Source: Diadema antillarum
Lineage: Eukaryota
DNA: 64,000 nt
Assembly: GCF_040938485.1 (NCBI RefSeq)
Contig: NW_027271416.1
Location: 62,001 to 126,000, forward strand
Direction: 5' to 3'
In this document: in pieces, positions 3,576 to 64,000 of the stretch
Numbering within the stretch: position 1 is the first letter of the stretch
Layout: each line of letters opens with the position of its first letter
Translations under genes and position numbers: made by a program
Notes under the pieces: generated by a model
Database searches by the model: none
Told to the model about the DNA's origin: nothing
What the model saw: only the letters and a program-made list of their open reading frames with translations

Positions 3576-4384
3576 TTCGCGAACAACGAGACAGACACTA
3601 TACGCGAAAGAGGCTCAGGACACCGACACTAGGCAAAGAAGGCCCACGAGACTGACACCCGTGGAGCTACAAAACCTAATACTGTGACTTGACTATGATT
3701 GCTCAGTCACGGTCAGTCTTCAGATATTCAAAGTACAACCTAGAGTAAACTGTGATGACATTTACAGATATTATATGCTTTGTGTTTACAGCACGCTGAA
3801 GGACGGGGTAGATACTACTTACACACACATACACACAAAAAAGAGCTACCACAGACAGAATACTTTGATGTAGAAACAGATTACACCGACAAAATCCATG
3901 ATCCATAGACCATAAAAGCTATTGGCATTGTCAACTTTTTATAAAATGACTTTGCATTGGAAAATTATACACTTATACCTAAAGTACTGAATATATAGAC
4001 TTTGTTACCAATTCATAGAAATGTAGGTCTACGCTGCAGAAGTCATGTACCTCACAACATACAAGAATTCCCCCAAACCACTTTAATACTTGCAGTAGAG
4101 GCAAAATATCAACTTTTTAACTGATTTTATGTGAAGAGCGTTCACCCTCCCATAATGTTGTATCAGTTGGAGCACTGATATCGCAAAACCCTGTTTCGGT
4201 TTTCTTTTGGAATGGTCAAGACGAGTGTATGGATGTTCATAATGAGTAGACGTGGCACAAGCATGTGCAGTCCATTATCATACTTCTAAACTTCATGTTT
4301 ATTGTACACTCACTTAGACTATCCCACGGAAGAACTTTTTTTTCCCTAACGTGCTACTGCAGAACGAAATCATCACATTTCACA

Positions 4385-5929
4385 TTACATTGCATAAAAA
4401 ATGTAAAGTCTCTCTGGAGTGCAGAAACCTATCTCACCACTCTCAAAATCTTGTAGATAGTACCAAGATCTTTCTGCTTTTTGTGTTTTGAATTCAGTGA
4501 TGAGATTGTGTATGTACTCCAAATCTCTCGTGTATCGATCGATACTGACGAGACCCTCTTCGTACTTCACCCAGGCTACAATGACCGAATCATCTTGACA
4601 AACAGCTGGGTAGGGATCCATACCCTTCTTCTTCAAGACATTCCCCTTCTTCCCCTTACCATCAGGGCACACGACAGCTCTATCGTCAGCTACCATCAGT
4701 TTCCCCGTTGACGGAAAGAAGAATAATTGCCAAGGTGTATAACCATCGCACATTATTTCCCTGACTGCCTTACCACCCTGTGGGGTAAATACATGGATCT
4801 TTTTGAGCTCAATATAACTCACATAGATATTATCATCTCTATCCACAGTGAGACCACCAGACCCTCCTTCATCATCACTCATCGTCTCGAAAGTGACGTC
4901 TTCTCCCATTTTGGAGTGTATACAGTGACATCCCGTTTTTTATATCACGTACAACACTTCGACCATCAGACAGGAATCCAGTTCTCCTGACATTGACATC
5001 CTTCAGCACGGTCTGCTGTAACTCGCCATCAGGGGAGTAGAGATGGATTCCGCCTTGACCGGATCCCACCGCCATCTTACCGTCTGGTGCACGAGTTATA
5101 CAGTTCATTCTGTTGTCAGGGAGCTCTTCGTCTGCTTTGACATCCCACGTGTAACCTTCCAGCTCTCCAAGATGAAGTTCATTGACCTTCACGTGTTTAC
5201 TGAATGAAATCTTCTGAGCTTGTTCTGCCACACCTCTCGGTGATTGGTCGTCAGGATCATCTCGTCCCAGAAAGCTCTTCAAGTCCTCACACAACGTGCC
5301 GTGTGCAATCAAGGCGTCTTTGTCTAGTGGTACCTTCATACCGTTAGTTACCAGCTCTTCCATAGCTTTCATTTGATGAATTGTTTGGTGACTCACTTCC
5401 TCCATGATTTGTAATTCCTTCTCGAATTTTTTAGACAATCGTTTCACTTGACATTTCAGGGTCTCCCTTCTGGCTGACAATAGTTGCATGTATTCCTCGT
5501 ACGCCTTGTCGATGTTATCATTGAGTTTTCTCATCATGTTTGCTATTTCATTGCGCTGTGTTTCTATGAAATCAATATGATTTTCGACGGTTGTTTTCTT
5601 TGATTTTGCCCTTTCTCGTAACTCATTGATATTTTCCATAAATTTCCCCTCATGGATAGCTGCCTCTTCGATCTGATGCCCTGCTTGTAAGTGCACTAAC
5701 ATCCCGCATCTCAAGCAGACATACTCCCGACATCCGATACAAAAACACTCCTCATCATCGTTAGGATGTTTCTTACACTTCCGTCTCCTCTTTAGCGGAA
5801 CTTTTCCCGAGAGCACTCCACTCGTGGCCACCACTACGTGGTTGGAGAACCTTTGCCACACAGAATGGTCTTTCTCACAGGATACACACATGTTTTCCCC
5901 GCAGTCCTGACAGTAGGACACAGCTTGCG
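4385..5929 (-). pseudogene. TRIM (B-box/coiled-coil/NHL-like propeller) pseudogene, copy 1
   Basis: ORFs 4875-5921 and 4385-4909 are two frames of one paralog. A 4-nt deletion plus a 2-nt insertion near 4889-4921 (relative to copy 4) shifts the frame. The RING, start codon and splice acceptor are replaced by a MITE at 5930. Confidence 0.9.
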
Positions 5930-6320
5930 AAAGGGACTGTACAGTATACTGGTTGAGGTGGAGATTAATGTTTCGAAAATTCCAAGTGAGATCATGAGAA
6001 ATCTCTTATGAAATATGAAAGATCATGTAATATTCAGAAGGTTCAACGTTTATTTGATGAAAATTGGTTTTTCAAATGGCTGAGATATCAAAAAAAAAGT
6101 GATAATGATAAATGGCGACAGGCCACGCCTTTTATTAGGATTTCTTTGTTCACCTTGTTTTTCGATACCTCAGCCATTTCAAAATCGATTTTCAAAATAA
6201 TAAACTTTTGATATACCCCTTAGAATTGCATGCTCTTTGACATTTCAAAGAGTGGTTTCTGAATATCTCGCAAAACGTCACAAGCTAAATCCTCACCTCA
6301 AACAGAACTGTACACACCCT
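5930..6320. mobile_element. ~390-bp MITE with AGGG...CCCT termini and an internal hairpin; same family as 48074-48723
   Basis: Termini AAAGGGACTGTACAG...CTGTACACACCCT. Internal inverted repeat AAATGGCTGAGATATC / GATACCTCAGCCATTT. Body aligns by eye to 48074-48723. Confidence 0.65.
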
Positions 6321-7189
6321 ATCATAACATATCACGGCCAAATGAATCTTATTTTTCTGTGTTCCTTTGAATGGAGGAGATCACATGAACTAGTTGTCCG
6401 GTGAGCCGGCTATAGGATGGTGCAACTTAGGATAAATTAAGGTGTTACTTGCTAATTCCCTGAAGGAGTATAAGTAGAACAACAAAGAGTTGCATTACGA
6501 TACGCTCACAAAATATAACGTGGTGATTCGAGCATCTGATGGATTGATGATTCATTTAATCGTGACCTTATAAGTTATATTTATAGTAGCGAGAATATCC
6601 TCAGCGATATCGTAAAAAAGTGCCATGTTAAAGTGAATATCAATGATAATGTGAGCTAAATGATAGAGATTATTGTTTAGAAACCTATGTCCGTTTGACT
6701 GCTGGTATATGTCACGTAACAAGGCATCCTTCAATGTTCAATCTATGTCCATATCCTCGAGAGATAGTATCAATATTCTTTTTTAAATTTCCATAAAGAT
6801 GTTGGTTACGTATGTCTTGGAAGACATATTAACTTTAATAATTTATCTCATACGTCAAGAGCAGAGATAAGCAAAAAGATTACAATTTTCCCTGGATTAA
6901 ATTACATTATAAACAAAGAAAAAAAAGCGGCGCGTCTTGTGAGAAAAGCTTTGAAATCTTCGATGTTAAAACATGTCTATCAAGAATGGTGCAATGAATA
7001 GAATGAATAAAGTAAACGAGTAAAGAAGAATAATTTCAGCCCTTCGGTGACTGATGGTTGTTAGCTGTGATGGAAGCCACTGTGGATTCAATGTCCTTTC
7101 AAGGTTTATTTATACCTGAAATGCATCTAGCGTGCAGAGTGATGTTCTTTCCTAGAATATATTTTGGAAAGATTTAACTGCCATGATTG

Positions 7190-8895: not shown

Positions 8896-8917
8896 ACCAA
8901 GTATGCTGCACTTCCGG
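8896..8917 (-). promoter_or_regulatory. Predicted 5' splice donor of TRIM non-coding leader exon plus ETS-type site (unit 1)
   Basis: TTG|GTGAGC with GT at 8897-8896; CCGGAAGT at 8910-8917. Conserved in four units. Confidence 0.55.
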
Positions 8918-9494
8918 GTTCAGTGTTTCTGATTTATGTCTGGTTCTGAAGTACATTTAGACATGGATCGAATTACAACCTGTTGTCTGTTCAGCACGAG
9001 GAGAGGTGTAAACACAAATTAGATTGAAGACCTAAAAAAGCAAAGAATTACTTTTTGGAAAGAGATATTGCGGAGCACTGACAAAATGGTCGGGCGATTC
9101 AGGGGAATGACTGTATTTACCGTGACCTTTACACTGCGAGCCTCTATATTTAGAGAAGTGGGTTTTCCCCACATCTCAAACACTATGCATCTATCTGAAA
9201 ATCACAGCTCATAACGGAATGTCGACTTGTACAGGGACCTGTTCATGCGACATTGAGCTGAGATTACCTTTTTTTTAAGAGTAAGATGTAAACAAAAGCA
9301 TGTTAAAGCATCACTTCGAAGAGAATCTGAGTAAAATAAGACAATATTTGGTTATAATATAGAAAATTCTGTCATTTATCCTTCCGTTGTGATATTTTTC
9401 AAATCTGAGAAAACAACCACGATCAAAGAGCCGAGATGTTTTGCTGATGTAGAAAGATTGTGATGTTCAGATGCCTTTTCCTTTTTTTTTAAAC

Positions 9495-9695
9495 TTGTAA
9501 TCTGTCTTTATTAAGGCCCAGAGTAGCACCCATTTTCTCTCTTGAAACGATGTCGGGATATCAGTCGATGTCGAATTCAGCCGTCAGCCTCTCGAGCTGC
9601 CATTCGGTGAACACGGTCGGACGTCGACGACGAAGGCCTTTGGTAGGAACGGACGTCGAGACTTGAGGGAGAAGCGAGAGTGGAGAATCAGCCAC
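9495..9695 (-). pseudogene. pmar1-like homeobox exon-1 remnant A (no exon 2)
   Basis: 201 nt reading VADSPLSLLPQVSTSVPTKGLRRRRPTVFTEWQLERLTAEFDID*YPDIVSREKMGATLGLNKDRLQ. ATG has become GTG, TGA at 9561-9563, donor GTTTAA. Confidence 0.9.
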
Positions 9696-15775: not shown

Positions 15776-17626
15776 TTATATCACATCAAATAGGTAAAGT
15801 CTATCAGGAGTGCAGAAAGCTATCTCACCACTCTCAAACACCTGTAGATAGTACCAATTTCTGTTCTCTGGTTTTTGTATTTTGAAATCAGTGATGAGAT
15901 TGTGCATGTGCTCCAAATCTCTCGTGTAGCGATCGATACTGACAAGACCTTCCTCGTGCTTCACCCAGGCTACAATGACCAAATCATCACGACAAACAGC
16001 TGGGTAGGCATACACACCCTTTTCCTTCTTAACGACATTCTCCTTCTTCCCCTTACCATCTAGGCAGACGACAGTTGATTCATCTTCCAGAATCAGTTTC
16101 CCCCTGGTGTGAAAGGAGAATAATTGCTGGGGTGTATATCCATCACACATTATTTCCCTGACTGCCTTACCACCATGTGGGGTAAATACCTGGATCTTTT
16201 GAGGTTTCCTATAACTCATGTAGATATTATCATCTCTATCCAAAGTGAGACCACCCAACTTTTCCTCATCGAAACTCATCATCTTGAACGTGACGTCGAG
16301 CTTCTCCCTCTGTGGAGTGTATAGTGACATCGTGTTGTATGTATCACATACAACACTTCGACCATCAGACAGGAATCCAATACCAAGGATACCGACATCC
16401 TTCAGCACGGTCTGCTGTAACTCGCCATCAGGGGAGTAGAGATGGATTCCACCTTCCCACGATCCCACCGCCATCTTACCGTCTGGTGCACGAGTCATAC
16501 AGACCATGCTGTCTGTGATAGGGAGTTCTACGTCTACTTTGACATCCCACGTGTAACCTTCCAGCTCGCCAAGATAAAGTTCATTGACCTTCATGTATCT
16601 ACAGAATGAAATATTCTGAGCTCGTTCTGCCACACCTCTCGGTGATTGGTCGTCAGGATCATTTTGTCCCAAAAAGCTCTTCAAGTCCTCGCACAGCGTG
16701 TCGTGTGCAAACAAGGCGTCTTTTTTTAGCGGTACCTTCATACCGTTAGTTACCAGCTCTTCTACAGTTTTCATTTTATGAATTGTTTGGTGACCCTCTT
16801 CCTTCATGATTTGTAATTCCTTCTCGAATTTTTCAGACAATCGTTTCACTTGACATTTCAGCGCCTCTCTTCTGTCTGACAATAGTTGCATGTATTCCTC
16901 GTACGTCTCGTCAATGTCACCATTGAGTCTTCTCATCATGTTTTTTATTTCATTTCTTTGTGTCTCTATGAAATCGATATGATTTTCAATGGTTGTTTTC
17001 TTTGATTTTGCCCTTCCTTGTAATTCCTTGATATTTTTCATCAATTTCTCCTCATGGATAGCTGCCTCTTCGATCTGATGCCCTGCTTGTAAATGTCTTA
17101 ACATCCCGCACTTACAGCAGACGTACTCCCGACATCCGGTACAGAAACATTCCTCATCATCGTTAGGATGTTTTTTACACTTCCGTCGCCTTTTAAGCGG
17201 AACTTTTCCTGAGAGCACCTCGCTCATGGCCACCACTACGTGGTTGGAGAACCTTTTCCACACAGAATGGTCTTTCTCACAGGATACACACATGTTTTCC
17301 CCGCAGTCCTGACAGTAGGACACAGCTTGCGGCTTTTCGTCCATCTCACAAACTGAGCACGTTGGGCTCTTGGCTTTCACTTCGTCCACGAGAGAACTCA
17401 GGGGTACGTTTGTTTGTAACTTACTCACATCTCCACTGGGTACGGGCGTTTCTTTCCTGCATACAGGACATGCTATAGTTTGTTGGTTTGGCTGAGTTTG
17501 AGAGATACGTTCCAAACAGTTTTTGCAGAAGGTGTGAGAACATGCCAGTGATTTAGGTTGGTGGAATAGCGTCAGACAGATAGGACACTCCAGATTCTGG
17601 CTGCTGATTTGATGAAACGTTGCCAT
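15776..17626 (-). CDS. TRIM E3 ubiquitin ligase, RING-Bbox1-Bbox2-coiled coil-NHL-like beta-propeller (TRIM-NHL/TRIM56-like architecture), copy 2, 616 aa, single coding exon
   Basis: C3HC4 RING CPIC..CSHTFCKNC..CPVC; B-box CSVC..CQDC..MCVSCEKDH; B-box CKKH..CFCTGC..VCCKC..H. Heptad-rich middle and repeats such as PDGKMAVG and GGLTLDRDDNIYMS. Candidate acceptor CAG at 17641-17640, 13 nt before ATG. Confidence 0.93.
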   Translation of the reverse strand: MATFHQISSQNLECPICLTLFHQPKSLACSHTFCKNCLERISQTQPNQQTIACPVCRKETPVPSGDVSKLQTNVPLSSLVDEVKAKSPTCSVCEMDEKPQAVSYCQDCGENMCVSCEKDHSVWKRFSNHVVVAMSEVLSGKVPLKRRRKCKKHPNDDEECFCTGCREYVCCKCGMLRHLQAGHQIEEAAIHEEKLMKNIKELQGRAKSKKTTIENHIDFIETQRNEIKNMMRRLNGDIDETYEEYMQLLSDRREALKCQVKRLSEKFEKELQIMKEEGHQTIHKMKTVEELVTNGMKVPLKKDALFAHDTLCEDLKSFLGQNDPDDQSPRGVAERAQNISFCRYMKVNELYLGELEGYTWDVKVDVELPITDSMVCMTRAPDGKMAVGSWEGGIHLYSPDGELQQTVLKDVGILGIGFLSDGRSVVCDTYNTMSLYTPQREKLDVTFKMMSFDEEKLGGLTLDRDDNIYMSYRKPQKIQVFTPHGGKAVREIMCDGYTPQQLFSFHTRGKLILEDESTVVCLDGKGKKENVVKKEKGVYAYPAVCRDDLVIVAWVKHEEGLVSIDRYTRDLEHMHNLITDFKIQKPENRNWYYLQVFESGEIAFCTPDRLYLFDVI

Positions 17627-19712
17627 GGTGGCTGTCTATCTGTATGATAGCAAAAGAATGAAACGCATTGACGAGTAGTCCTATAAGCAGAAATGTGATA
17701 TTAGCATTTACCATAAAAAAGGAGAAAGTTGACAGTGCATGGTGTTAAAATGTTTGTAATCTTAAAATCGGACGAAGTCACGAAGCACAATTTAATAGAC
17801 GTGTGTGAATAATGTTTATCATTCATGTACTGTGTATGCTTTATATCCGAACCTAATAAAACTGATTCAATGGTGGTTCGTTTGAATTTTAGATCACGTG
17901 AACTATAGTAATTTGTTGTCCAGTGAGCCTGGCATTGGATGGAGCAACTTAGAATGAACTCAGATATTACTTGTTAATTCTTTAAAGGAGTATAATATTG
18001 TATTAGTCAAACAACAAAGAGTTGCATTGCGCTACACTAACAAAAATATGGCGTGGTGATTCGCGAAGTTTATGGAGGAATGACTCTTTTAATCTTGGCC
18101 CTGTATATTTATTGAAATATTGAAATATCCTCAGCGATTTTGTAGACAAAAAGGTCGTCATATTGAAGGTGAATAGCAATGAAAATGTGAGCGAAATGAG
18201 AGAAATTATTGTTAAAAAACGTAGTTCCTTTTGGCTGTTTGTATGTCATACAGCAGGGAGTCGTATTGTACAAAATATCCATATTTTTGAGAGATAGTAT
18301 CATTTTTTTTTTCATTTTCATAAAGATACTGGTTTCATTTGTTATGGTAGATGGCAGTATAAATGACAGGGGCGAATCTCACCGGTTCCATTTTCCGACA
18401 TGTTTGCTAAAATGTAGATCAGCAGTTGCGATCTTACAAATACATTTGCACAGAGTGAGACAATCTATAAAAAATCACAACACATCTTCACCCCTCTGCT
18501 CTAATAATCTCTTGCATTCATTTAATCCCATCTTTAGTTGACCATTCACTGATGGGATGGCTTCATTATCGACGCTTAGGATATATTACCCTGCCATTGT
18601 ATATTAGAATACTTATCTCAACACTGCTCAAGTATGGATGGCACTCCCAAGAAAAACAAAAACAAAAACAACAAGTAAATACAAATTAATCAAACAATTA
18701 ACAAAAAATAGAAAGAATATAGTGAAAAAAGAATCTGGCAGTTAAGCTTTTTCTTCAAACATCTCTCCTTGCTTTAAACGTCTATTAATTCTTTGTTAAA
18801 TAGAAGAATCATATCATTTGAGGAGGAAGTAACTGTGTCCCAAAAGAAAGAGAACAAGGAGTGAAGAGGAGAAGGACATTGCCATAAAATTTGACGGATA
18901 TAAACATCCTGAGGTGTTGTAACTCGATTAACATCAACATCTTTAATTACTCATTAATCAACCATAATTTACACGCTAGTATAACTGTTGCCATGTAGTC
19001 TACAAAGTAATACCAGCTCTGCCGACGTTCCTAAAATGTTGTTGTCATGTTAACATCTTTAGGGGACTCAAATGCATCGAAATGCACCTGAGGGAAAGAA
19101 ATATGTCAAACTTTATCATTTCATGAAGCAATTAGCTCCACATTCACAACAAACGCTCTTCGAGTACTTTTGTCCCTTGCCCGTAGACACTAACCGAGTT
19201 CATAAGATTCTGTGACCATTAATAGCCACCTCTCTCTCTTGTGTTTCAGTTGTTTAAGTCATATGGAAAGGAATTAGTGATTGAGCAGGCCACTGATGAT
19301 AATGGAAAAGGGAAGCCCTTAATATGTTTCACTTGTATCAAATTCCACTCATGTCTCTTATTCCCCAAACTATCTATTTACATTTATTTGTGATAAAGTC
19401 CTCAGAGGCTGATTTATTTCCAGCGGAGATAACGAGTAATGTCCTTTTTGAAACAGCATTACTTTATACTCATAACAGGCTATGCCAGTTGTTCTGCTTG
19501 GAGTACTATTATCTATACAAACTATAACATAGGTTGTGGGGTTAATCATGTTGAACAGAAGCAGCAAAGTCATAACAGAAATGTTGACTTAACAAACGAG
19601 GCAGAATCTGTTCCAAGCTTATTTGTTAAACATACATTTTTTTTGGGTGAAATTACGTGTCGCAGGTACAAGTATAACATGCATGTGTTAGTATCGTTTT
19701 GCATGCACGCTT

Positions 19713-19734
19713 ACCAAGTTTCCTGTACTTCCGG
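19713..19734 (-). promoter_or_regulatory. Predicted TRIM leader-exon donor plus ETS site (unit 2)
   Basis: TTG|GTAAGC with GT at 19714-19713; CCGGAAGT at 19727-19734. Confidence 0.55.
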
Positions 19735-20374
19735 GTTCAATATTTCTGAATTACGTCTGGCTCAGAAGTACTTTTAGGCATGGAATTACAACCTGTTGTC
19801 TATTCAGCACGAGGAAAGGTGTGATCACGAATTAGATTGAATGTTACTTGAAAGACCTAAAACAAAATGCGAAGAGTTAGGTGTTTTTTTAAGAGATATT
19901 GCGGAGCGCTGTCAAAATGGTCGGGCGGTTCACGGGAATGACTATCAACGGTTGACTATATTTACCGTGACCTTTATACTGCGAGCCTCTATTTATAGAA
20001 ACAGGTTTTCCCCACATTTCAATTCTCAAACACTATGCATCTATCTGAAAATCACAGCTCATAACGGAATTTATCCTTGTCCAGGGACCTGTTCACGCGA
20101 CATTGAGCTGAGATGAGGTGTTTTGTTTTTTTAAACAGTAAGATATTAACAAAGTCGTCATGTTAAAGCATTACTTCGAAGAGAATCTGAGTAAAATAAG
20201 ACAATTTGATTATTTAGAAAATTCTGTCATTTATCCTTCTGTTGTAATATTTTGAGATCTGAGGGAAAAAACCCCTTGATCAAAGAGCTAAGATGTTCTG
20301 CTGATGTAGAAAGACTTTGAAGTTCAGATCCTATGGAGGTTTTTTTCTTCTTTTGTTCTCGCTATTTTTTATAC

Positions 20375-20579
20375 TTGTAATCTGTCTTCACCGAGACCTA
20401 GAGTAGCAGCCGTTTTCTTTTTGGAAACGGTGTCAGGATATCTGTCGGCGTCGAATTCAGCCTTCAGTCTCTCAAGCTACCATTCGGTGAATCTGGTTGG
20501 ACGTCGACGATGAAGGCCTTCGGTAGGAACGGACACCGAGTCTTGAAGGAAAAGCGATAGTGCATGGAAAATCAGCCAT
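20375..20579 (-). pseudogene. pmar1-like homeobox exon-1 remnant D
   Basis: ATG at 20579, a 4-nt insertion near the start, TAG at 20477-20479 replacing Gln33. Remainder ..RRRPTRFTEW*LERLKAEFDADRYPD..LGLGEDRLQ; donor GTATAA. Confidence 0.88.
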
Positions 20580-21563: not shown

Positions 21564-21622
<59 letters not shown>

Positions 21623-24520: not shown

Positions 24521-25155
24521 TATTCTGCTTAATTCCGTTACATGAGATATGATTATGTACACGTCATTTATGACAAACAGTATATCGACACACAATTTTT
24601 AGTATAATTATACAAGACAAATACAAACAGCTTAGGGAACTTAAACAGAAGGGTCTCCAAAATAAGCCAAGGCTTGACGGTATGGAGACTCTATGCTTAG
24701 CTACTCTGGATAGAATAGGGGATAGATAGAGAGAGAAAGAGAGAGAGAGGGAAGAGTAAGGGGAAAACGGAAAAGGGAGAAAAGGGAAAATTACAGAGTG
24801 TATATGTACCACTCCAACTACTTTACAATAATAGTAATGGTAATAAATATAATATAACAATGATATTCAAGTTAACACGTTCAGTTGCCTTTGCTGGAGT
24901 AATGACCGAATATAAACTAAGAAAATAGTGATGTGTGAATACAAAGTATTCTATTATACATAAGGTTATCTGGCATGAAATAAAATATATCGTGCTTATT
25001 TTATGTGCGCAGTAATGTTAAGGCACATCGTATACATACATATACATGCTCATTATTAAACATGATGTACATATCATAATACATACACATACATACCCAT
25101 ATTCATAATATATATATATATGGATAGATAAACAAATCGATATATGTATGCACAC

Positions 25156-28045: not shown

Positions 28046-28067
28046 ACCAAGTATGCCGTACTTCTGG
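28046..28067 (-). promoter_or_regulatory. Predicted TRIM leader-exon donor with mutated ETS site (unit 3)
   Basis: TTG|GTAAGC with GT at 28047-28046; CCAGAAGT replaces CCGGAAGT. Confidence 0.5.
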
Positions 28068-40196: not shown

Positions 40197-40197
<1 letters not shown>

Positions 40198-43652: not shown

Positions 43653-43654
43653 GG

Positions 43655-43691
<37 letters not shown>

Positions 43692-45796: not shown

Positions 45797-45818
45797 ACCA
45801 AGTTTGCTGTACTTCCGG
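45797..45818 (-). promoter_or_regulatory. Predicted TRIM leader-exon donor plus ETS site (unit 4)
   Basis: TTG|GTGAGG with GT at 45798-45797; CCGGAAGT at 45811-45818. Confidence 0.55.
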
Positions 45819-46430
45819 GTTCAGTATTTCTGATTTGTGTCTGGCTCCGAAGAAGACCTACATTTTAGGCATGTATGGGATCACAACCTGTTGTCTGTTC
45901 AGCGAAGCCGAACACCTACATTGAATATGCTTTTACTGTATAGTCCCAAACAAAATGCGAAGAATCAGGTTTTAGAAAGAAACGTGCATGACGAAGCACT
46001 GACAAAATGGTCGGACGATTCAGAGGAATGACTGTACGTATTGTATATTTTACCGTGACCTTTACACCGCGAACATTCATATCTTATAGCCCACATCTCA
46101 AACACTATGTGCCTATCTGAAAATCACAGCTCATAACGAAATGTCGTCTTGTACAGGGAACAGCACTGTTCCTCGCGACTTTGAGCTGAGATGATTTTTT
46201 TAATAAAGAGAAAGATTTAAACAGAAATCGTCATGTTAGAGAATCACTTCAGCGTCGAGAATTTTAGTGACGAAAGACAATTTGTTTATTTAGAAAATTC
46301 TGTAATTTATCATTCTGTTGCGTTTTGTTTTTGATACTTGAGACAAACCACTGTCAAATAGCCAAGAATGTGTGCTCAAATATAAATTGTTTGATGTTCA
46401 GATCTTATGAGTTGTTTTTTTTTTTCATAC

Positions 46431-46631
46431 GTGTATTCTGTCTATATCGAGGCAGAGAGTAGCAACCAATTTCTCTCTTGAAATGATGTCGGGATATTGG
46501 TCGATGTCGAGATCAGCTTCAAGTCTCTCGTGCTACCATTCGGTAAATTTGGTTGAACGTCGACGACGAAGGCGTTTGTACGGAACTGACGCCGAGACCT
46601 CAGGGGGTAGTGAGAGTGGAGATTCAGCCAT
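46431..46631 (-). pseudogene. pmar1-like homeobox exon-1 remnant E
   Basis: 201 nt reading MAESPLSLPPEVSASVPYKRLRRRRSTKFTEW*HERLEADLDIDQYPDIISREKLVATLCLDIDRIH. TAG at 46533-46535; donor GTATGA. Confidence 0.9.
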
Positions 46632-48015: not shown

Positions 48016-48073
48016 ATGAACAGAACAATATTACACGAAATTTGGGTACGCATGTTTATTATTATTTGATTAC

Positions 48074-50495: not shown

Positions 50496-52299
50496 TGTAG
50501 CGTTATCTCGCACTCAAGCGAGCCTTCTACACAGAAGTGGTTAAGATTCAGTCCAAACGCACGCGTGCACCAATCAGACTCTCCACTCGACGAGCCCAAT
50601 GATCACAGGCACCAATTTCTTTACTATTCAAACACTAATAGCATCTTTATTGGCATTCTTCTTTAGCAGCGTCGAGCTGGCATGTGTAAGCATCAGCTGC
50701 ACATAAGCGTGGTTCACTGCAAGTGAACAGAAAAATACAATACAAATACATAATAACGTTTGCATTCTTTGTACTCTGTTACAATTCTTTGTTTCTTCTT
50801 CAATTCAACTAATTCTGTTACCTTATTTAACAGTGCACATACAATTTGCGCAGTATATACATAGCCTAAATACTCCTGGCTCAACTGAGTCAGTGTATTC
50901 TTTCACTAACATCGAAACTTGCAAGCTTCTTCCAGCATTGCATAAATTAGATAACAACTTCCACAGTACACTACATTTAGTGCAATAAAGAAGGAAATGG
51001 AGGATTAATTGGAAGAGAGAGAGAGAGAGAGAGAAGGCTGAAGCAAGGTACAGAACATAGGAGGAGAGGCAAAACTGTGATAAAACAAAGAGCCTGTTCG
51101 TTCAGACCTCTTTTCGTAGTGAGCTAATCCCTTCCTGCTCTGCTACAAACCCAAACATTGGAAGAGGCACATACAATCAAGATGCTCCTAAACAACTTCT
51201 GTAGGAGGTGCACTATTCTACATCACAGACCCGTAACACGATAGAAAGGTAAAATTCGCCTTTTTCTTCACTACATCTGAGCTTATATGCTCATAGAAAA
51301 TATACAGTGCATAATGAAGAATCATTTCATTATACCACAACTACGTCGTAAGTTAAATTGTAAGATATATGCCATCTACCCAACTCCACAAGCAAAGTAT
51401 GCTGCAACTGGGTCTGAAAAGCTAAACTAATCTCGATTTATGTACAGAGGGTTTTACTGCCTCTTGGCTGGACAATGACATTGTCCACCTACACTGCCCC
51501 CATACACCTGAACTTGTATCAAACTTTGGGCATCGTATTCTCTTTGTTCTTACAGCATGCTATATACAATACACTGTGACTCATACTGTCATGTTCACAC
51601 ACAAGGTAAAAAGCTGAGATTACAGCTAGGAGCTGTTCACACAGCACTTGTTATATACTGCACTCTGCTCCTGCAAGCCAATTCACATTTCATATAGTAT
51701 CCGGAGCAAACTTACATCTACAGTAGGACACTTCATTGCAACAATATAAGACATATCATAGCTTTTGATTCTGCCTATATATCTGCAAACAGATATAGCA
51801 GCTAAATCACTCATATACTCAATCAATATTTACTAGAGAAAGGTTGAACAAATCATATCAATCTGCGAGATGTCTTTCTTCTTATTTTCTCCTCTGCTAT
51901 GTAACCTTTCTGTGCATGAGGAACACAGATACTATATACAGACAATAATATTGACTAAATTATAACATTTGATGTTTCGTGCAACTGCCTTTGATCAGCC
52001 ACATCTCAAATATATAGAAATTTGGACAGAGTTATAACTTACCGACTGTTATCCGTCCCTGACTTCACAGACTTTTTCACTACACATCTCTGCTGGGGTG
52101 CAAGTGGTCCTTGCCTCACAAAGGATGATGTGCCAACTGCTGGTGTGGCACAATGTTACCCCTCTCCTCAGAGGGATTATCTAAGGGATTTGGGGGTGCC
52201 ATACCTATTTAAACACAGTACTTTTCTTGAGGGCGACCAAGGGGTGGGACCCCTATTTGGTAACTGATTTTCATGGAAATAATACTTCCTGCCGCTACA
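50496..52299 (-). repeat. 3' LTR (1804 bp)
   Basis: Direct repeat of 56503-58306 (offset 6007); TG...CA ends; AATAAA on the minus strand at 50646-50651. Confidence 0.96.
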
Positions 52300-52522
52300 T
52301 ACCGGCCCCAATGAGCCTACTACAGAGGGGTCATTTTCAATATTACTTAGGAGCGGCATTCTAACAATCATTCATACTTAAATCATAACAATATCTCAGG
52401 TTGAACACGAAAGATAAACAATATACTACACTCATGTTCAACTGAGATCTCAAATAACAACCTGATGTAGATTTATTTCCCAACTACAGCTTCTAGCAGG
52501 CAAAGCTTGGAAATTGGTCTTT

Positions 52523-52778
52523 TCAGGAATCTAGATCAACCTTGATTTCTACCTGGCGGACTAACCCGTCCTTCCCTGGGAACACCTCGACTACCTTTCC
52601 AAGCGGCCACTGTCCCCTCGGAGCATTGTCATCTGCCACAAGGACTAAGTCATTTATGGCCAAATTCCTACGTGGAGTCAGCCATTTCTGTCTTTCTTGT
52701 AGCAAAGGCAAGTACTCTGCTTGCCATCTCCGCCAGAAGGCCGACGCCAAGTACTGAACATGTTTCCACCTGTGCCTC
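52523..52778 (-). pseudogene. Out-of-frame C-terminal BEL integrase tail (DUF5641-like)
   Basis: [32 protein letters not shown]...APRGQWPLGKVVEVFPGKDGLVRQVEIK. Confidence 0.88.
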
Positions 52779-55700
52779 CCAACTCAAATTTCGCCTGCAT
52801 AGGTTCTGAAGGAGTATTTTTGCCGGAAGCACGAATGGAGCCAGAAAACCCAAAGGATCGTAGAGAGAACTTGCAACAGACAAGATCCCACGTCTTGTCA
52901 CCGGCTTGTCCTTTACCTGAACCTCAAACTTGAAGGAGTCTGTTTGCACATCCCACAATATGCCTAATGTGCGCTCCACAGGCATCTCTTCCAAGTCTAG
53001 ACTCAAGACTGAAGCTGCCCTATCAGCCTCTGGAATTGTGGTCAACACGTCACGATCATTGCTGATCCACTTCCTCAAGTGGAATCCACCCTTGGCAAGC
53101 AAACTTCTCAATCCTTGCACAAGACTCTCAGCTGCCTCCTTCGATTCGACAGATTTCAGGCAATCATCGACATAGAAATTTCTCTGGATAGTTTTGATTA
53201 CCTCTTCATCATAATCACCCTTGTTATCAGCTGCAGTCTTTCTCAACGCGAAGCCAGCACAGCTTGGTGACGATGTCGCACCAAAGGTGTGCACAGTCAT
53301 GCGATACTCCTGGGGATCCTGCTGTAGGTCACCGTCTGTCCACCACAGGAATCGAAGGGCATTTCTGTCCTTCGTCGACACCTTGACCTGATGAAACATG
53401 GATTCTATGTCACCCATGACAGCGACATGATCCTGCCGAAATCTCATCAAAACACCTGCAAGATTGTTAGTTAAGTCTGGACCTTGTAGCAACTGCTCAT
53501 TGAGAGATGTACCACCAAACCTAGCCGCACAATCAAACACTACTCTAGCCTTACCCGGCTTGTGTGGGTGGAAAACTGGATGGTGTGGAAGATACCACAC
53601 CACATCCTCTGACTCTACTTCAGACTCTGGTGATGTTGCCTCAGTCTCAACAATCTCAGCGTAACCCTTGTCTATGTACTCTGACATAGTAGATGTGTAT
53701 TTCTCACGGAGGACATCATCTCTCTCAAGCTTCCTCTTGAGATACCTGAGTCTAGCCTCTGCAAGGCCCCTGTTGTTCGGAAGACTCGGAGGACAAGATC
53801 GCCATGGCAAACCAATCTCATAGTGACCATCACTGAGCATGGCACTATTCTGCATCATGGAGAGAGCTCTCTTATCTTCTACAGAGTCACCCACCTTATT
53901 GTCTAGAAGATATGCACCATGGTCTGCCTCCCAAAACTGCTTGAGTTGATTTTGCAGTGGGTCTGGCTGCAGCTGAGTGAAATTTACACTCACATGTTGT
54001 GATCTCTGCTGAGAAGATGTTGGCCCAAAGAGAGTCCAACCAAGTGGAGTACGAACGGCATACGGCTCTTTCCTTTCTCCGCGCCTCTGCTCCAGTACCC
54101 AGAATGCTTCCGGAGTATCTGCTCCTATCAGAATCTGCACCTGTTTTCTTTCGATTGATGGCAAGTGTAAGTCTTCAAGATGTGGCCACTGCTTCACATC
54201 TTGACTACATGGGAATGAGGAGGTGGATATGGGAAGGCAATCAACAGTCCATACATGAGGTAAGTTAATAACATCATCCTCGTCAACACCATTTACAGAG
54301 AGACTTACTTCCATCCCTTTCTTTGACGAAGCCTGCTGATTGACTGAAGTTAACTGAAAATCTACTTCCTTCCCAGCTAACCCTAACTCATCTGCTAGAC
54401 CTTTGCTACATAGCGTGACGTCACTTCCCTCATCTAGCAATGCCCACGTTGTTGCGCTTCGCCCATTACCTTCTACCCTAACAGGCACTACTCGCAAACG
54501 TACGTTCTGTCTGAAAGCATGAGCGCTGTATGTCTGACCACCCCTGTTCCCTACTTCATCAGTAGCAACTGGACCATCCTGATTCTGAACACCCTGATTG
54601 GCATGAGCAGCGTTTTGAGGCTCAATTACATTCTGCCTGTTAGCCTGACTTTGTCTCATTTCTCTATCAGGAGGATGAAGCAGTGAGATATGCCTTTTTC
54701 CACATCCCTTGATCTGGCATGCTGGCTTTGCGAGACAGCCGACGGCCATGTGCATTGGCTGCATGCAGTTATCACACAACTTTGCCTGTCTCGTAAATGC
54801 CTTCCTTTCTTCAAAGGACTTCTTCTTGAACACTGGGCAGAATAGTATGTCATGACTGCCCTGGCAACACTGACATTTTCTCTCAAATTTCTTTTCACTG
54901 CTAGCCGAGGATGGAGGTGTAAATTTGCTACCAGATCCCTGTGTAGCAAATGACATCATCTCGTTGCTCGCCTTTGGCTTTGGAGATTTGATGCTTGCGT
55001 TTGGCTTTAATGCCTTTCCAATATTTTGACCAAACATATTGGTGGCAAGCTTTGCAGACTCTTCTACAAATGCAGTCATGACTTCAAAGTTGGGAACAAC
55101 CCCCCTGCACATCATTGAGTGCGCCCTCTTTGCCCACTCTGCTTGCAGATGTAGTGGGAGCAACTGTTGGATACTTAGAAGGTTATCTGAGCTATTCATG
55201 TCAGCCCCATACCCCCTTTGAGACAACACCATGTGACACCGTTTCATGTCACGTGCCAAATCCCACAATGCATCACCGTCATTAGGTCTGATTTGTTGCC
55301 GAGACAGCACCTTTTTCATGTGGGCGTGGCTCACTTGGTACGACTGCCCAAACTGATCTGCTAGTATTTCCCTAGCCTTTTGGTACCCTTCGTTACCCAA
55401 GAAAGTACAGTTTTCAATACTCTCCTTGGCCTTTCCTCTACAGTACTGAATCAAATATGTCAACTTGACTCTCTCATCACTCGTTTTGGAGGCTACGGTA
55501 GTCTCAAACTGATTGATAAATCCCCAGTACTCTAGTGGATTACCGTCAAACACTGCTATTTCTGGTTTAGGCATGTTTAAAGCCAAATCGATTGCCTGGA
55601 ACAATTGATTTACGGGAGCAATACCGGCCCCAGTTACATCATCATTTCTCTCTTTCTGAAACCACTCAGGAGCACTGGGATTCAAGCCCGAGCTATCACT

Positions 55701-56465
55701 GACTTTGTTAGCATTCTCAGGATTAGATGTTTCCCTATCGTGACTAACTGTCTCCCTCTTTACATCATGACCCCCTGATTGGCCTACCTTTACTTCCCTC
55801 ACAGGGCTACTATGAGACATGTCATATTTAAATTGTACTGAGTCCACCTGAGGTGCGTCGTCATCACTCTCCTCCTCGAGGATCTGCAGCTCCACCTCGG
55901 CAGCCTCTATTTCGTTGTCAGCCTCCATCGCCGCTATCTCTTGCTGAAGTTTAAGCTCCTGTTCCCTCAGCTGTTGAGCTCGATGAAGCTGCTCTCTCTT
56001 CAGTCGTGCTACAGCTGCCTTGGCCCTAGCTTCCCTCAGCCTTGCCGACGATGAACTGGAGTTCGACCTCTTCGATGACCTGATGCTCGATGACGTCGAT
56101 GAGCGGACCGATGTCGCAGATGAATGGACCGATGCCCTGTCGTCATCCTTATCAGCACCTCGATGTCCTGCCGCCTTCTCCAGCCAGCCTTGTAGCCTAG
56201 TGTTGAACTCTTCTTTATTGTTGACGCTGGCATTGAACTTTGCTTCTGCGGTTTCTGCTTCAGCTCCAGACAGTGTGCTATGATATTGGCGGTACTTTTC
56301 TTCATACTGCACAAATACCCCTATCAACTTCTGGTACTTTTCATTCACCGCATCTTTATTTCCAAAGTCAGCCATCAACACTTCGAGCTCCTTGTATAGC
56401 CTCGACAGCCATCCCTGGTGTGCTGACCATGACTGTTTCAGCGATTGAGTTGCCGCATCATCCAT
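52668..56465 (-). CDS. BEL/Pao gag-pol polyprotein, truncated within RNase H
   Basis: Gag [13 protein letters not shown]; three Cys/His knuckles; protease ALLDEGSD; RT YLPHHPV...FYVDD; RNase H start TRRGILS..YDPLG..NLSW, then the deletion junction at ~52779. First ATG outside the LTR is at 56465. Confidence 0.92.
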
Positions 56466-56502
56466 CTCGTAGTCGTAAACAGCAAGTCGTGAACTTATTC
56501 TA

Positions 56503-58306
56503 TGTAGCGTTATCTCGCACTCAAGCGAGCCTTCTACACAGAAGTGGTTAAGATTCAGTCCAAACGCACGCGTGCACCAATCAGACTCTCCACTCGACGA
56601 GCCCAATGATCACAGGCACCAATTTCTTTACTATTCAAACACTAATAGCATCTTTATTGGCATTCTTCTTTAGCAGCGTCGAGCTGGCATGTGTAAGCAT
56701 CAGCTGCACATAAGCGTGGTTCACTGCAAGTGAACAGAAAAATACAATACAAATACATAATAACGTTTGCATTCTTTGTACTCTGTTACAATTCTTTGTT
56801 TCTTCTTCAATTCAACTAATTCTGTTACCTTATTTAACAGTGCACATACAATTTGCGCAGTATATACATAGCCTAAATACTCCTGGCTCAACTGAGTCAG
56901 TGTATTCTTTCACTAACATCGAAACTTGCAAGCTTCTTCCAGCATTGCATAAATTAGATAACAACTTCCACAGTACACTACATTTAGTGCAATAAAGAAG
57001 GAAATGGAGGATTAATTGGAAGAGAGAGAGAGAGAGAGAGAAGGCTGAAGCAAGGTACAGAACATAGGAGGAGAGGCAAAACTGTGATAAAACAAAGAGC
57101 CTGTTCGTTCAGACCTCTTTTCGTAGTGAGCTAATCCCTTCCTGCTCTGCTACAAACCCAAACATTGGAAGAGGCACATACAATCAAGATGCTCCTAAAC
57201 AACTTCTGTAGGAGGTGCACTATTCTACATCACAGACCCGTAACACGATAGAAAGGTAAAATTCGCCTTTTTCTTCACTACATCTGAGCTTATATGCTCA
57301 TAGAAAATATACAGTGCATAATGAAGAATCATTTCATTATACCACAACTACGTCGTAAGTTAAATTGTAAGATATATGCCATCTACCCAACTCCACAAGC
57401 AAAGTATGCTGCAACTGGGTCTGAAAAGCTAAACTAATCTCGATTTATGTACAGAGGGTTTTACTGCCTCTTGGCTGGACAATGACATTGTCCACCTACA
57501 CTGCCCCCATACACCTGAACTTGTATCAAACTTTGGGCATCGTATTCTCTTTGTTCTTACAGCATGCTATATACAATACACTGTGACTCATACTGTCATG
57601 TTCACACACAAGGTAAAAAGCTGAGATTACAGCTAGGAGCTGTTCACACAGCACTTGTTATATACTGCACTCTGCTCCTGCAAGCCAATTCACATTTCAT
57701 ATAGTATCCGGAGCAAACTTACATCTACAGTAGGACACTTCATTGCAACAATATAAGACATATCATAGCTTTTGATTCTGCCTATATATCTGCAAACAGA
57801 TATAGCAGCTAAATCACTCATATACTCAATCAATATTTACTAGAGAAAGGTTGAACAAATCATATCAATCTGCGAGATGTCTTTCTTCTTATTTTCTCCT
57901 CTGCTATGTAACCTTTCTGTGCATGAGGAACACAGATACTATATACAGACAATAATATTGACTAAATTATAACATTTGATGTTTCGTGCAACTGCCTTTG
58001 ATCAGCCACATCTCAAATATATAGAAATTTGGACAGAGTTATAACTTACCGACTGTTATCCGTCCCTGACTTCACAGACTTTTTCACTACACATCTCTGC
58101 TGGGGTGCAAGTGGTCCTTGCCTCACAAAGGATGATGTGCCAACTGCTGGTGTGGCACAATGTTACCCCTCTCCTCAGAGGGATTATCTAAGGGATTTGG
58201 GGGTGCCATACCTATTTAAACACAGTACTTTTCTTGAGGGCGACCAAGGGGTGGGACCCCTATTTGGTAACTGATTTTCATGGAAATAATACTTCCTGCC
58301 GCTACA
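56503..58306 (-). repeat. 5' LTR (1804 bp)
   Basis: Direct repeat of 50496-52299. Confidence 0.96.
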
Positions 58307-60636: not shown

Positions 60637-62493
60637 TTATATCACATCAAATATGTAGAGTCTATCTGGAATGCAGAAAGCTATCTCACCACTGTCAAAC
60701 TCTTGTAGATAGAACCAATTTCTTTTCTCTGGTTTTCGTATTTTGAAATCCGTGATGATATTGTGCACGTGCTCAAAATCTCTCGTGTATCGATCGATAC
60801 TGACGAGACCCTCCTCGCGTTTCACCCAGGCTACAATGACCGAATCATCTCTACAAACAGCTGGCCAAGCATATATACCCTCCTTCTTCAAGACATTCTC
60901 CTTCTTCCCGTTTCCATCAAGGCACACGACAGTTGATGCATCGTTCAGTATCAGCTTCATCGTGGTGTGAAAGGAGAATAATTGCTGAGGTGTGCATCCA
61001 TCACACATTATTTCCCTAACTGCCTTACCACCCTGTGGGGTAAATACCTGGATCATTTTGGCCTTCCTATAACTCACGTAAATATTATCATCTCTATCCA
61101 CAGTGAGACCACCAGTCCCTCCTTCATTATAGCTCATCGTCTCAAACGTGACGTCAAGCTTCTCCCACTGACATGACTGAGGGATGTATAGTGACATCTT
61201 TTCGTTTGTATCACGTACAACATATCGACCATTAGACAGGAATTCATTTTGACGTATTTTGACGTCCTTTAGCACTGTCTGCTTTAGCTCGCCATCAGGG
61301 GAGTAGAGATAGATACCGCCTTCAGGCGATCCCACCGCCATCTTACCGTCTGGAGCACGAGTCATACAGTTCATGCTATCTTCACCCGGGAGCTCTACGT
61401 CCGCTTTGATATCCCACGTGTAGCCTTTTAGCTCTCCAAGACAGAGTTCATTGACCTTTACATGTTTACTGAATGAAATCTTCTGAGCTCGTTCTGCCAC
61501 ACCTCTCGGTGATTGGTCGTCAGGATCATCTCGTCCCAGAAAGATCTTCAAGTTCTCGCACAACGTGTCGTGTGCAATCAAGGCGTCTTTCTCTAGTGGT
61601 ACCTTCACACCGTTAGTTACCAGCTCTTCAATAGCCTTCATATGACGAATTGTTTGTCGACTGTCTTCCTCCATGACTTGTAATTCCTTCTCGAATTTTT
61701 CAGACAATCGTTTCACTTGACATTTCAGGGTCTCTCTTCTGGCTGACAATAGTTGCATGTATTCCTCGTACGTCTTGTCGATGTCATCATTGAGTCTTCT
61801 CATCATGTTTGTTATTTCATTTCGCTGTGTCTCTATGGAATCGATATGATTTTCAATGGTTGCTTTCTTTGATTTTGTCCTTTCTTGTAACTCATTGATG
61901 TTTTCTATCAATTTCTCCTCATGGATAGCTGCATCTTCGATCTGGTGCCCTGCTTGTAAGTGCTTTAACACGACGCATTTATGGCAGACGTACTCTCGAC
62001 AATCGGTGCAGAAACACTCTTCATCATCGGTAGGGTGTCTCTTACACTTCCGTCGTCTCTTAAGAGGAACTTTTCCCGAGAGTACCTCACTCATGGCTAC
62101 CACTGTGTGAGTAGAGAACGGTGTCCAGCCGGAATGTTTTGAGTCACATAACTTACACATATATTTCCCACAGTCCTGACAGTAGGTAATAGCTGTCGGC
62201 TTTTCGTCCATCTCACAAGCTGTGCATGTTGGATTCTTGGTTTTCACTTCGTCCACGAGAGAATTCAGGGGTACGACTGTATGTAACTTACTCACATCTC
62301 CATTGGGTAGGGGCGTTTCTTTCCTGCATACAGGGCATGTTATAGCTTGTTGGTTTGGCTGAGTTTGAGAGATGCGTTCCAAGCAGTCTTTACAGAAGGT
62401 GTGAGAACAGGCCAGTGATTTGGGTTGGTTGAATAGTGTCAGGCAAATGGGACACTCCAGATTCTGGCTGATGATTTGATGAAACGTTGCCAT
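60637..62493 (-). CDS. TRIM E3 ligase (RING-Bbox-Bbox-CC-NHL-like), copy 5, 618 aa
   Basis: Intact ORF from the conserved MATFHQ ATG (62493). Acceptor TAG at 62508-62507, 13 nt upstream of ATG. Confidence 0.93.
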   Translation of the reverse strand: MATFHQIISQNLECPICLTLFNQPKSLACSHTFCKDCLERISQTQPNQQAITCPVCRKETPLPNGDVSKLHTVVPLNSLVDEVKTKNPTCTACEMDEKPTAITYCQDCGKYMCKLCDSKHSGWTPFSTHTVVAMSEVLSGKVPLKRRRKCKRHPTDDEECFCTDCREYVCHKCVVLKHLQAGHQIEDAAIHEEKLIENINELQERTKSKKATIENHIDSIETQRNEITNMMRRLNDDIDKTYEEYMQLLSARRETLKCQVKRLSEKFEKELQVMEEDSRQTIRHMKAIEELVTNGVKVPLEKDALIAHDTLCENLKIFLGRDDPDDQSPRGVAERAQKISFSKHVKVNELCLGELKGYTWDIKADVELPGEDSMNCMTRAPDGKMAVGSPEGGIYLYSPDGELKQTVLKDVKIRQNEFLSNGRYVVRDTNEKMSLYIPQSCQWEKLDVTFETMSYNEGGTGGLTVDRDDNIYVSYRKAKMIQVFTPQGGKAVREIMCDGCTPQQLFSFHTTMKLILNDASTVVCLDGNGKKENVLKKEGIYAWPAVCRDDSVIVAWVKREEGLVSIDRYTRDFEHVHNIITDFKIRKPEKRNWFYLQEFDSGEIAFCIPDRLYIFDVI

Positions 62494-63081
62494 GGTGTCT
62501 GCTTGTCTAATAGCAAAAGATTCAAACAAAACAAAACAAAAACAAATAGCGTTAAACGCACCAACGAATACAAGCAGAAATATGATATTAGCATTTATCA
62601 AAATAAAAAGAGAGAAGTTAATGGGAAGCATGGTGTCAAAATTGTTTTGGATTCGTCATAAAGGACGAAGTAATGAAGCGCAATTTAACAGATTTGTGTA
62701 TCTTTGTTCACTATACCTGTTTTCTGTGAATACTTTAAAACCGGGCTCAATAAATTTGATTTTGATGGTTCATTTGAATGGAGGAGATCACAATTTGTGT
62801 AAACTTCGATGGGATGCTTTCATTATTTTCGTCCAGTATAACATCCTTCATTGTTGATTTGAATACATTATACTTACTCAATTCTGGATGACTCCCCACC
62901 CCCCCCCCCCATCATCCCCAATAACACACCCACAAATCAAGCAAATGAATATTATTCAAACAACAAACAAAAGAGAAAGAATAGTGACGGATTTTTTTCA
63001 ACATAGGCCCACTTCCTTGCTTCTGCTGAGGCAAATGCCAAATTTTTGCTTCCAAGTTATCAGATACCAACAATGCAATTC

Positions 63082-63349
63082 ATTTCAATTCATTTCAATT
63101 CAATTCAATTCAAATCAATTTATTCGGAATTTTCTGCATTGAGCATAATTTTACAAATGATATACAGTCATTTTTTTTTTCTAACACAATAAGGAATACA
63201 GTCTACGTACATCCAAACATTATTGAAGTTTATGCGTACAATGGGCCGTTAACAGATTGAAGAATAGAAAAAGAAAACACGTCGTTGGGAGCTACTCAGG
63301 ATAGTGTGAAACAGATGGTCTGACTGAATTATGGTACATGTATTGTGGG
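63082..63349 (-). mobile_element. Probable 5'-truncated LINE 3' end with (TTGAA)n tail
   Basis: Minus-strand AATAAA followed by (TTGAA)n. ATGCAATTC at 63073-63081 and 63350-63358. Absent at paralogous ~27430. Confidence 0.45.
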
Positions 63350-64000
63350 ATGCAATTCTTTAATTGGTATTTGTGGGAATGAGTAAAATTTGTGGGAATT
63401 GTTGAGTGATAAAGCAATTAAATCCTTGACACCAGGGGAAAGTAACTCATGCAACAAAAGAAAGAGAACAAGGAAGAGGACGAGGACATCGTCATAAAAA
63501 TTTACGGATACAAACATCCCGAGGTGTTAATACTCAGTTCATACATCTCTGCCCATTACAAGCTTATTCACGCGCTAGTATAACTGTGTCTATATGGTTT
63601 ACAAAGTATTACCAATTTTAACTCTGCTCATGTTTCTAAAATGTTGTTGTCATGTTAACAACTTTCGGGGACTCAAATTTGTTGAAATGCATCTTAAGGA
63701 AGGGAATATGTCTAACATCATTATTTCATGAACCAATTAGCTGCACATGACAACAAGCGTTCTTTTAGTAAATTTGTCACTTATCTGCATACACTATAAA
63801 AAAGTTCAAAAATAACCATGAATAGCATGCACGTCTCTCTTGTGTTTCAGTCGTTTAAGTTATGAGGAGGACGTGATTGAGCAAGCCACTGTTAATACAG
63901 TAAAAAGGGAAGTTCTAAGGAGGTCTGACATGTACCAAGTTCTACTCATGTCTCCCAATTCCTCAAACGTCGATCGTTCTACACTAATTTCGGATAAGTC

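Follow-up and report, generated by a model that had tools for sequence, protein, structure and literature searches.

The pmar1 gene stands at the top of the micromere and endomesoderm program of sea urchins, and the evolution of its gene cluster is actively studied. Diadema is an early-branching modern urchin. We analyzed a 64,000-nucleotide stretch of the Diadema antillarum genome (RefSeq assembly GCF_040938485.1, contig NW_027271416.1, positions 62,001 to 126,000; referred to here as the window, with positions counted from its first letter). It belongs to this species' pmar1/micro1/hbox12 homeobox cluster, and in it genes of a TRIM family are interleaved with complete and broken pmar1-type genes. 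Echinoid hbox12/pmar1/micro1 clusters have been described as tandem sets of fast-turnover, two-exon, paired-class repressor genes, in which the exons are similar and the non-coding DNA has diverged past alignment, some copies carry premature stops, transposon relics lie around the copies, and trees group the copies by species or genus (Cavalieri, Geraci & Spinelli 2017, PMC5370098). The Diadema cluster resembles them in each of these respects but differs in that most units of the window contain a TRIM gene and, of pmar1, nothing but a dead exon 1. We consider it likely that a TRIM gene has hitch-hiked structurally in a pmar1 cluster undergoing recombination, with no functional partnership between the two families.

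The analysis followed up an original prediction, made by a model from the DNA letters alone, that TRIM and pmar1-like genes had been amplified together at this locus and that the TRIMs might share an early-zygotic expression domain. None of the papers searched combines pmar1 with "tripartite motif." A suspected linkage of the P. lividus TRIM gene strim1 to hbox12 could not be confirmed; in the papers examined, strim1 serves to control injections and to mark ventro-lateral ectoderm, and its genomic place is not mentioned. Two Diadema genome papers, one of them PMC13511894, mention neither pmar1 nor the TRIM family, and the inventory of hbox12 in P. lividus, which omitted "unrelated genes" flanking the copies, reported no TRIM neighbor (PMC5370098).

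Homeobox genes, relics, and the layout of the array

The window holds two complete pmar1-type genes which, like every TRIM and pmar1-type feature of the array, lie on the minus strand. HD-A (30152 to 31298; exon 1 at 31298-31098, exon 2 at 30529-30152) encodes 192 amino acids and equals annotated protein P0140; its C terminus is about 35 amino acids shorter than that of 230-amino-acid paralogs. HD-B (34887 to 36020; exon 1 at 36020-35820, exon 2 at 35369-34887) encodes 227 amino acids and is 93% identical to the Diadema setosum protein P0121. In both genes a paired-class homeodomain (Q50) is interrupted by an intron at position 46/47, between DRIH/Q and VWFQNRR, with donor CAA/GTATGT and acceptor TTAG/GTC in HD-A and donor CAC/GTAGGT and acceptor CCAG/GTC in HD-B. 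The two genes differ by a synonymous divergence (dS) of 0.44; their introns can no longer be aligned, and similarity ends at the exon boundaries. Each protein contains the motif MSVDFLS(RS) twice, like the octapeptide repeats of Hbox12 (PMC4273433).

Protein searches place both genes in one family. The exon-2 part of HD-B, which includes only the last 14 residues of the homeodomain, matched a Scaphechinus protein named "Micro1/Pmar1 related" (5.8e-23), the H. pulcherrimus protein Q5TLG4 (3.9e-15; named "Homeobox protein" in the source), which we take to be Micro1, and the S. purpuratus "paired class homeodomain repressor" (6.1e-13); this search matched no further named family. A search with full-length HD-A agreed, returning Pmar1/Micro1-type proteins. 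In a homeodomain tree the Diadema copies formed a single starred clade (98) with three subtypes, beside camarodont Pmar1/Micro1. By sequence, HD-A and HD-B belong to the Pmar1/Micro1/Hbox12 family. The pmar1-like identity put forward in the original prediction is borne out by the exon-2 and full-length searches, and the tree agrees as far as the position beside camarodont Pmar1/Micro1 goes; it was built with S. purpuratus LOC590448 and a homeodomain protein of Lamellibrachia as the available outgroups, and a separation from Phb, Hbn, Otx, and Alx is putative.

Five TRIM copies were recovered by tblastn and scans of open reading frames, three of them intact (T2, T4, and T5) and two broken (T1 and T3). 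T2 (15776 to 17639; coding sequence 15776-17626) is an intact coding exon for 616 amino acids with a splice acceptor 13 nucleotides before the ATG, T4 (41808 to 43652) encodes 614 amino acids, and T5 (60637 to 62493) encodes 618 amino acids and equals annotated protein P0012. The pseudogene T1 (4391 to 5927) is without the RING domain and the first ~100 codons and carries one frameshift near 4900; T3 (25128 to 26887) has a frameshift near 25990 and a stop at 25403-25401 and has lost its 3' end. The pmar1-type complement comprises five loci, namely, HD-A, HD-B, and three relics of exon 1 (R1, R2, and R4). A relic lies 2.8 to 3.8 kb upstream of T1, T2, and T4, and HD-A and HD-B lie upstream of T3, in an 8-kb segment between T4 and T3. 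The order within the cassette is relic exon 1, ~0.5 kb of spacer, a non-coding TRIM exon 1, an intron of ~2 kb, and the TRIM coding exon. When the window was compared with itself, the units aligned at 70 to 84% identity over most of their length at offsets of ~10.7 kb, and because of this unit-long alignment the array is not a chance arrangement.

These results agree with the original prediction on the five TRIM copies, on the common strand, and on a layout in which three units pair a TRIM with an exon-1 remnant and a fourth holds two full genes. They also uphold its central structural claim, that a TRIM gene and a piece of pmar1 were duplicated together as one cassette, given the unit-long homology and its occurrence in D. 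setosum (see below). The prediction had counted six pmar1-like sequences, one more than the loci present: low-stringency tblastn (E<5) and a six-frame reading of ~3540-3800 found no sixth copy in the window. The only extra match, at 3631-3699 (E=1), was rejected, as its translation is not homeodomain-like.

The relics, called "half-genes" in the original prediction, are instead dead remnants. In R1 (9492 to 9695) the ATG has become GTG, a TGA stop interrupts the homeodomain, the donor reads GTTTAA, and there is no exon 2; in R2 (20372 to 20563), 4 bp are inserted after the ATG and a TAG stop is present; and R4 (46428 to 46631) keeps its ATG and has the same TAG stop as R2. The relic donors are decayed and unlike one another (GTTTAA in R1; GTATAA and GTATGA in the others). 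Neither a WFQNRR-type motif nor any similarity to exon 2 was found in the relic units, and within the window these features occur only in HD-A and HD-B. When whole units are aligned, the relic exon shows no more conservation than its surroundings, and its similarity to the live genes ends at the exon boundaries. The TGG-to-TAG nonsense codon of R2 and R4 recurs in a D. setosum relic at the orthologous place (L001, 3798-3923), which also has an internal deletion. Because these three relics share one nonsense mutation, we read the relics as having been dead before the cassette was amplified.

Two further observations concern the relics. R1 is closer to an HD-A-type exon 1 of D. setosum (L001, 17778-18025; 87 to 88%) than to the other relics, and the change from ATG to GTG is common to both, yet the flanks of R1 are of the relic type; the likeness may reflect gene conversion from a live gene, or it may be a coincidence. 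In all relics, an A-rich run (6 to 11 A) lies a few nucleotides past the exon-1 boundary (9478-9492, 20357-20372, and 46413-46428), and the introns of the live genes likewise begin with GTATGTAAAAT. The run may be the poly(A) remnant of a partial retrocopy or may have arisen by slippage of the GTATGTAAAAT start of the intron. Deletion of exon 2 and retroposition of a partial transcript are both possible origins of the relics.

TRIM genes, their first exon, and their relatives

The RING domain was recognized in T2, T3, T4, and T5 (Pfam zf-RING_UBOX and zf-C3HC4, 1e-8 to 1e-10) and is absent from T1. Two B-boxes are indicated by Pfam zf-B_box matches and by invariant Cys/His clusters at residues 90-129 and 150-183. 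In an AlphaFold model the coiled-coil region forms a helix of 108 residues (188-295), with a predicted local distance difference test (pLDDT) value that exceeds 90 along most of its length; a second helix follows at 302-320. On these matches and this model, we assign the genes to the TRIM (RING, two B-boxes, coiled-coil) family. The C-terminal domain was modeled as a six-bladed propeller (pLDDT 86.7), whose best fold matches are the NHL domains of TRIM2, TRIM3, Mei-P26, Brat, and Lin-41, with template modeling scores of 0.68 to 0.77 when normalized by the length of the target and 0.62 to 0.71 by that of the model. The Pfam NHL repeat was not detected in the propeller, and matches to SGL were weak and below the cutoff. 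Because the match exists at the level of the fold and not at the level of a Pfam NHL sequence hit, we call the modeled propeller "NHL-like."

A block of ~110 to 130 bp with a CCGGAAGT-type motif lies 0.9 to 2.3 kb upstream of the ATG in the nine TRIM loci compared. In all nine it ends in an invariant TTGGT.AG, which we read as a splice donor, CTTG/GT(A/G)AG, and the coding exon is preceded by a polypyrimidine tract that ends in AG ~13 nucleotides before the ATG, with T4 as the exception. Lytechinus TRIM homologs have the same acceptor feature. In the window, all on the minus strand, the block occurs in unit 1 (8898 to 9030, with the CCGGAAGT motif; last exon base 8898, donor GTGAGC), upstream of T2 (19715 to 19844; last exon base 19715, donor GTAAGC, with a predicted intron at 19714-17640), in unit 3 (28048 to 28131; last exon base 28048), and upstream of T4 (45799 to 45930; last exon base 45799, donor GTGAGG), and the block of T5 is expected beyond the end of the window. 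The block is likewise present upstream of D. setosum paralogs on three other chromosomes (L008, L009, and L010), where no homeobox relic was found within 10 kb of the TRIMs; L009, a tandem array of TRIMs only, has a period similar to that of the window. Conservation and splice signals together suggest that the block is the family's own promoter and non-coding first exon, and the relics are predicted not to be needed for TRIM expression. The resulting gene models, in which one coding exon follows a non-coding first exon, would serve for this large family of TRIMs with NHL-like propellers.

In T4, a (CAGA)n run (43653-43700) fills the 45 nucleotides before the ATG in place of the polypyrimidine tract and acceptor, and splicing of this gene may differ or be impaired. 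T1 (4372-5929) and T4 (41795-43357) are 92% identical exactly over the coding part and ~73% identical in the flanks, which suggests a gene conversion tract. A separate observation concerns the L008 (OZ188190.1) and L010 (OZ188188.1) TRIMs, which are 84% identical in DNA to T2 from 15 nucleotides before the ATG to a few nucleotides after the stop. Outside the coding part, only the first-exon block matches and the flanks cannot be aligned, although dS is like that among in-array copies; exon-limited conversion or an unusual mode of dispersal is possible. Among the listed annotated TRIM matches (P0001 to P0120), none contains homeobox exon-1 sequence. The long models P0001 to P0003, considered as candidates for homeobox-TRIM fusion proteins, are TRIM-TRIM merges.

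Each Diadema genome has at least 90 TRIM paralogs at ≥60% identity, spread over many chromosomes and contigs, and the best matches to the TRIMs of the window all come from D. antillarum and D. setosum. T2, T4, and T5 fall in a starred clade of 17 rows, 14 of which come from the window, from the pmar1-bearing chromosome of D. setosum, or from pmar1-bearing contigs of D. antillarum; this fits a single arrival of a TRIM in the cluster followed by local amplification. Since T5 has co-orthologs in D. setosum and T2 and T4 group with P0004, part of the array is older than the split between the species. Synonymous divergence is 0.12 to 0.18 between orthologs of the two Diadema species and 0.22 to 0.37 among in-array TRIM paralogs.

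The original prediction had described these TRIMs as diversifying, a description that the propeller favors weakly and the substitution rates do not. The ratio of nonsynonymous to synonymous divergence (dN/dS) is 0.3 to 0.46 overall and ~0.06 to 0.1 in the RING and first B-box, and it exceeds 1 in no 40-codon window when pairwise values are averaged over pairs. Across 68 Diadema paralogs variability is highest in the propeller domain, where it peaks at intervals of about 40 residues, roughly once per blade, at T2 residues ~371, 411, 451, 471-491, 511, and 581 (encoded in 15776-16560). Such periodic peaks suggest a putative variable binding face.

The interleaving is shared with D. setosum, in which two loci are colinear with the window. 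One (L001, on OZ188189.1) carries the relic, an ortholog of T2 (84% amino acid identity), and an HD-A-type copy; the other (L007) carries the ortholog of HD-B and an HD-A-type gene and differs from the window in having no TRIM within 10 kb upstream of the HD-B ortholog. The homeobox copy downstream of the T2 ortholog (L001, 17815-19071) keeps both exons, begins with GTG, and meets a stop after ~88 codons; it is probably a pseudogene. In L. variegatus, the pmar1 array comprises four copies in a ~3-kb repeat with no TRIM between them in the ~20 kb inspected, and three TRIM homologs lie on the same chromosome 5.7 to 8.5 Mb away (56.4 and 59.2 Mb, against 64.9 Mb for pmar1). The S. purpuratus array, with two copies in a ~6-kb repeat between a methyltransferase gene and HECT genes, likewise had no TRIM in the ~20 kb inspected. 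No pmar1-TRIM pairing was found within the short contigs of another echinoid assembly in the European Nucleotide Archive. Synteny extends the predicted cassette to D. setosum and not to the two camarodont arrays as inspected; that TRIMs are unlinked to pmar1 in these relatives is one half of what the original prediction had named as a mark of incidental hitch-hiking, the other half being expression in adult tissue only.

Two mobile or repeat elements complete the window. A BEL/Pao-type retrotransposon (50496 to 58306, minus strand) occupies the spacer between T5 and T4, with long terminal repeats (LTRs) of 1804 bp, TG...CA ends (TGTAGC...GCTACA), and a 5-bp target duplication, CCGAG. Its 1312-amino-acid open reading frame (52668-56606, minus strand) contains DUF1759, an aspartyl protease, a reverse transcriptase, and the start of Peptidase_A17. 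Because the LTRs are 100% identical, the insertion is very recent. At 1390-3575, an inverted repeat pairs 1390-2504 with 3575-2499 at 89 to 93% identity, and its arms of ~1.1 kb are almost in contact; this is a candidate foldback-type element.

Origin and meaning of the linkage

We infer that the array arose in the following order. One member of a large, fast-evolving family of TRIMs with NHL-like propellers would have landed beside a pmar1 copy that had already lost exon 2 and gained a nonsense codon. Unequal recombination in the tandem cluster would then have multiplied the resulting ~10.7-kb cassette, and birth-and-death turnover and gene conversion would have reshaped it afterwards. If so, the linkage would carry no regulatory meaning of its own.

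An alternative hypothesis is that TRIMs within the cluster have the same very early zygotic (micromere) expression as pmar1 through a common regulatory domain and that the cassette has been kept for this reason. Conservation of the interleaving between D. antillarum and D. setosum would suit it, as would the intact state of three of the five in-array TRIMs, which are under purifying selection, and the clade that the in-cluster copies form on their own. Nevertheless, we regard it as unlikely: the first exon/promoter block is family-wide and also present in TRIMs far from any pmar1, the Lytechinus and Strongylocentrotus arrays show no linkage in the ~20 kb inspected of each, and dead copies make up two of the five TRIMs and three of the five homeobox loci. 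TCF and Otx motifs occur in background numbers upstream of the TRIMs, the homeobox genes, and the relics, and these counts are uninformative. We likewise see only a slim chance that the TRIMs are under a putative early-zygotic control of the cluster, exerted through a chromatin domain or residual relic promoters, with cleavage-stage onset together with pmar1. Were this true, the locus would be an echinoid parallel to the genome-activation clusters of mammals and would add a new ubiquitin-ligase layer atop the micromere program. A more specific proposal is that a relic exon 1 and its promoter provide the TRIM coding exon, through splicing, with an alternative 5' leader, which would bring the TRIM under pmar1-type control. 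The relics do share the strand of the TRIMs and precede the TRIM first exon by ~0.5 kb; a splice acceptor stands 13 nucleotides before the ATG of the coding exon; and all three relics have either lost the ATG or acquired an early stop after it, which would permit translation of the TRIM. We nonetheless find this proposal very improbable, given that the relic donors are decayed and differ from one another where the TRIM donor is invariant, that relic identity equals flank identity, that the D. setosum relic is internally deleted, and that no homeobox exon-1 sequence occurs in the listed TRIM matches.

The repeats could also be an assembly artifact, with haplotypes or misjoined contigs mistaken for units. 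The D. antillarum v0.4 assembly has ~2.5 times the size estimated for the haploid genome and is incompletely collapsed (PMC13511894), the window contains one gap, and the frameshifts of T1 and T3 are known from the assembly letters alone. The gap (34197 to 34353) lies between HD-B and HD-A, 530 bp past the stop codon of HD-B and 2.9 kb upstream of the start codon of HD-A. It touches no exon and, being intergenic, is spanned by no reading frame. Its flanks at 34733 and 34191 are colinear with 11229 and 11851 of L007, and there appears to be no sign of a whole unit missing there. The units differ by 20 to 27% in DNA, far beyond the allelic level, which matters in an incompletely collapsed assembly, and the independent chromosome-level assembly of D. 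setosum is colinear with the window, gap included. An artifact of this kind seems to us extremely improbable. In D. antillarum, two contigs of 513,450 and 1,073,883 bp, the first of which is listed as bearing T5 itself, each carry pmar1-type genes and TRIMs of the in-cluster type; because haplotype collapse is incomplete, they may represent two haplotypes of one locus, and copy numbers in the assembly may be doubled.

Several points weigh against hitch-hiking without function. The arrangement is older than the split between the Diadema species (ortholog dS of 0.12 to 0.18) and three in-array TRIMs have kept intact frames (dN/dS of 0.3 to 0.46); persistence and intact frames would also be expected if the position were useful. 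A putative co-regulation through a shared chromatin domain may exist. The predicted TRIM first exon is drawn from sequence conservation and splice signals, and each outgroup pmar1 array was covered over only ~20 kb. The annotation and public RNA sequencing data for D. antillarum come from adult tissues only (PMC13511894). If the TRIMs proved to be co-expressed with pmar1, the locus would be considerably more important; as things stand, we view the linkage as a probable structural by-product.

Comparison with other homeobox and TRIM systems

Whatever the meaning of the linkage, the pmar1 cluster of Diadema illustrates concretely how developmental gene arrays specific to a lineage are remodeled: it has pmar1 genes of three subtypes, many dead copies, and, amplified inside it, a foreign gene family. 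The arrays of L. variegatus and S. purpuratus are pure pmar1 repeats over the stretches inspected, unlike that of Diadema.

The TRIMs of the array share their RING, B-boxes, long coiled coil, and six-bladed propeller with TRIM-NHL proteins such as TRIM2, TRIM3, TRIM71/Lin-41, Brat, Mei-P26, and Thin. They are unlike these proteins in having no Pfam NHL match, no filamin domain, and a single coding exon. Canonical TRIM-NHL genes are few and conserved, whereas the Diadema family reaches at least 90 copies in each genome, arranged in tandem arrays specific to the lineage.

The original prediction drew a parallel to the cleavage-stage paired (PRD)-class homeobox genes and TRIM43/49-type genes of mammals. 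The likeness to Diadema lies in the combination of fast-evolving paired-class homeobox genes with an expanded TRIM family, both in tandem arrays; the mammalian genes are not known to be physically interleaved as those of Diadema are, and Pmar1 is a repressor. The nearest general parallel is the carrying along of genes by unequal recombination in tandem arrays, in which a unit likewise contains an unrelated gene and a truncated fragment and is subject to birth and death and to conversion tracts. Nothing essential separates the Diadema array from such cases; its one special point is the identity of the host array, the pmar1 cluster.

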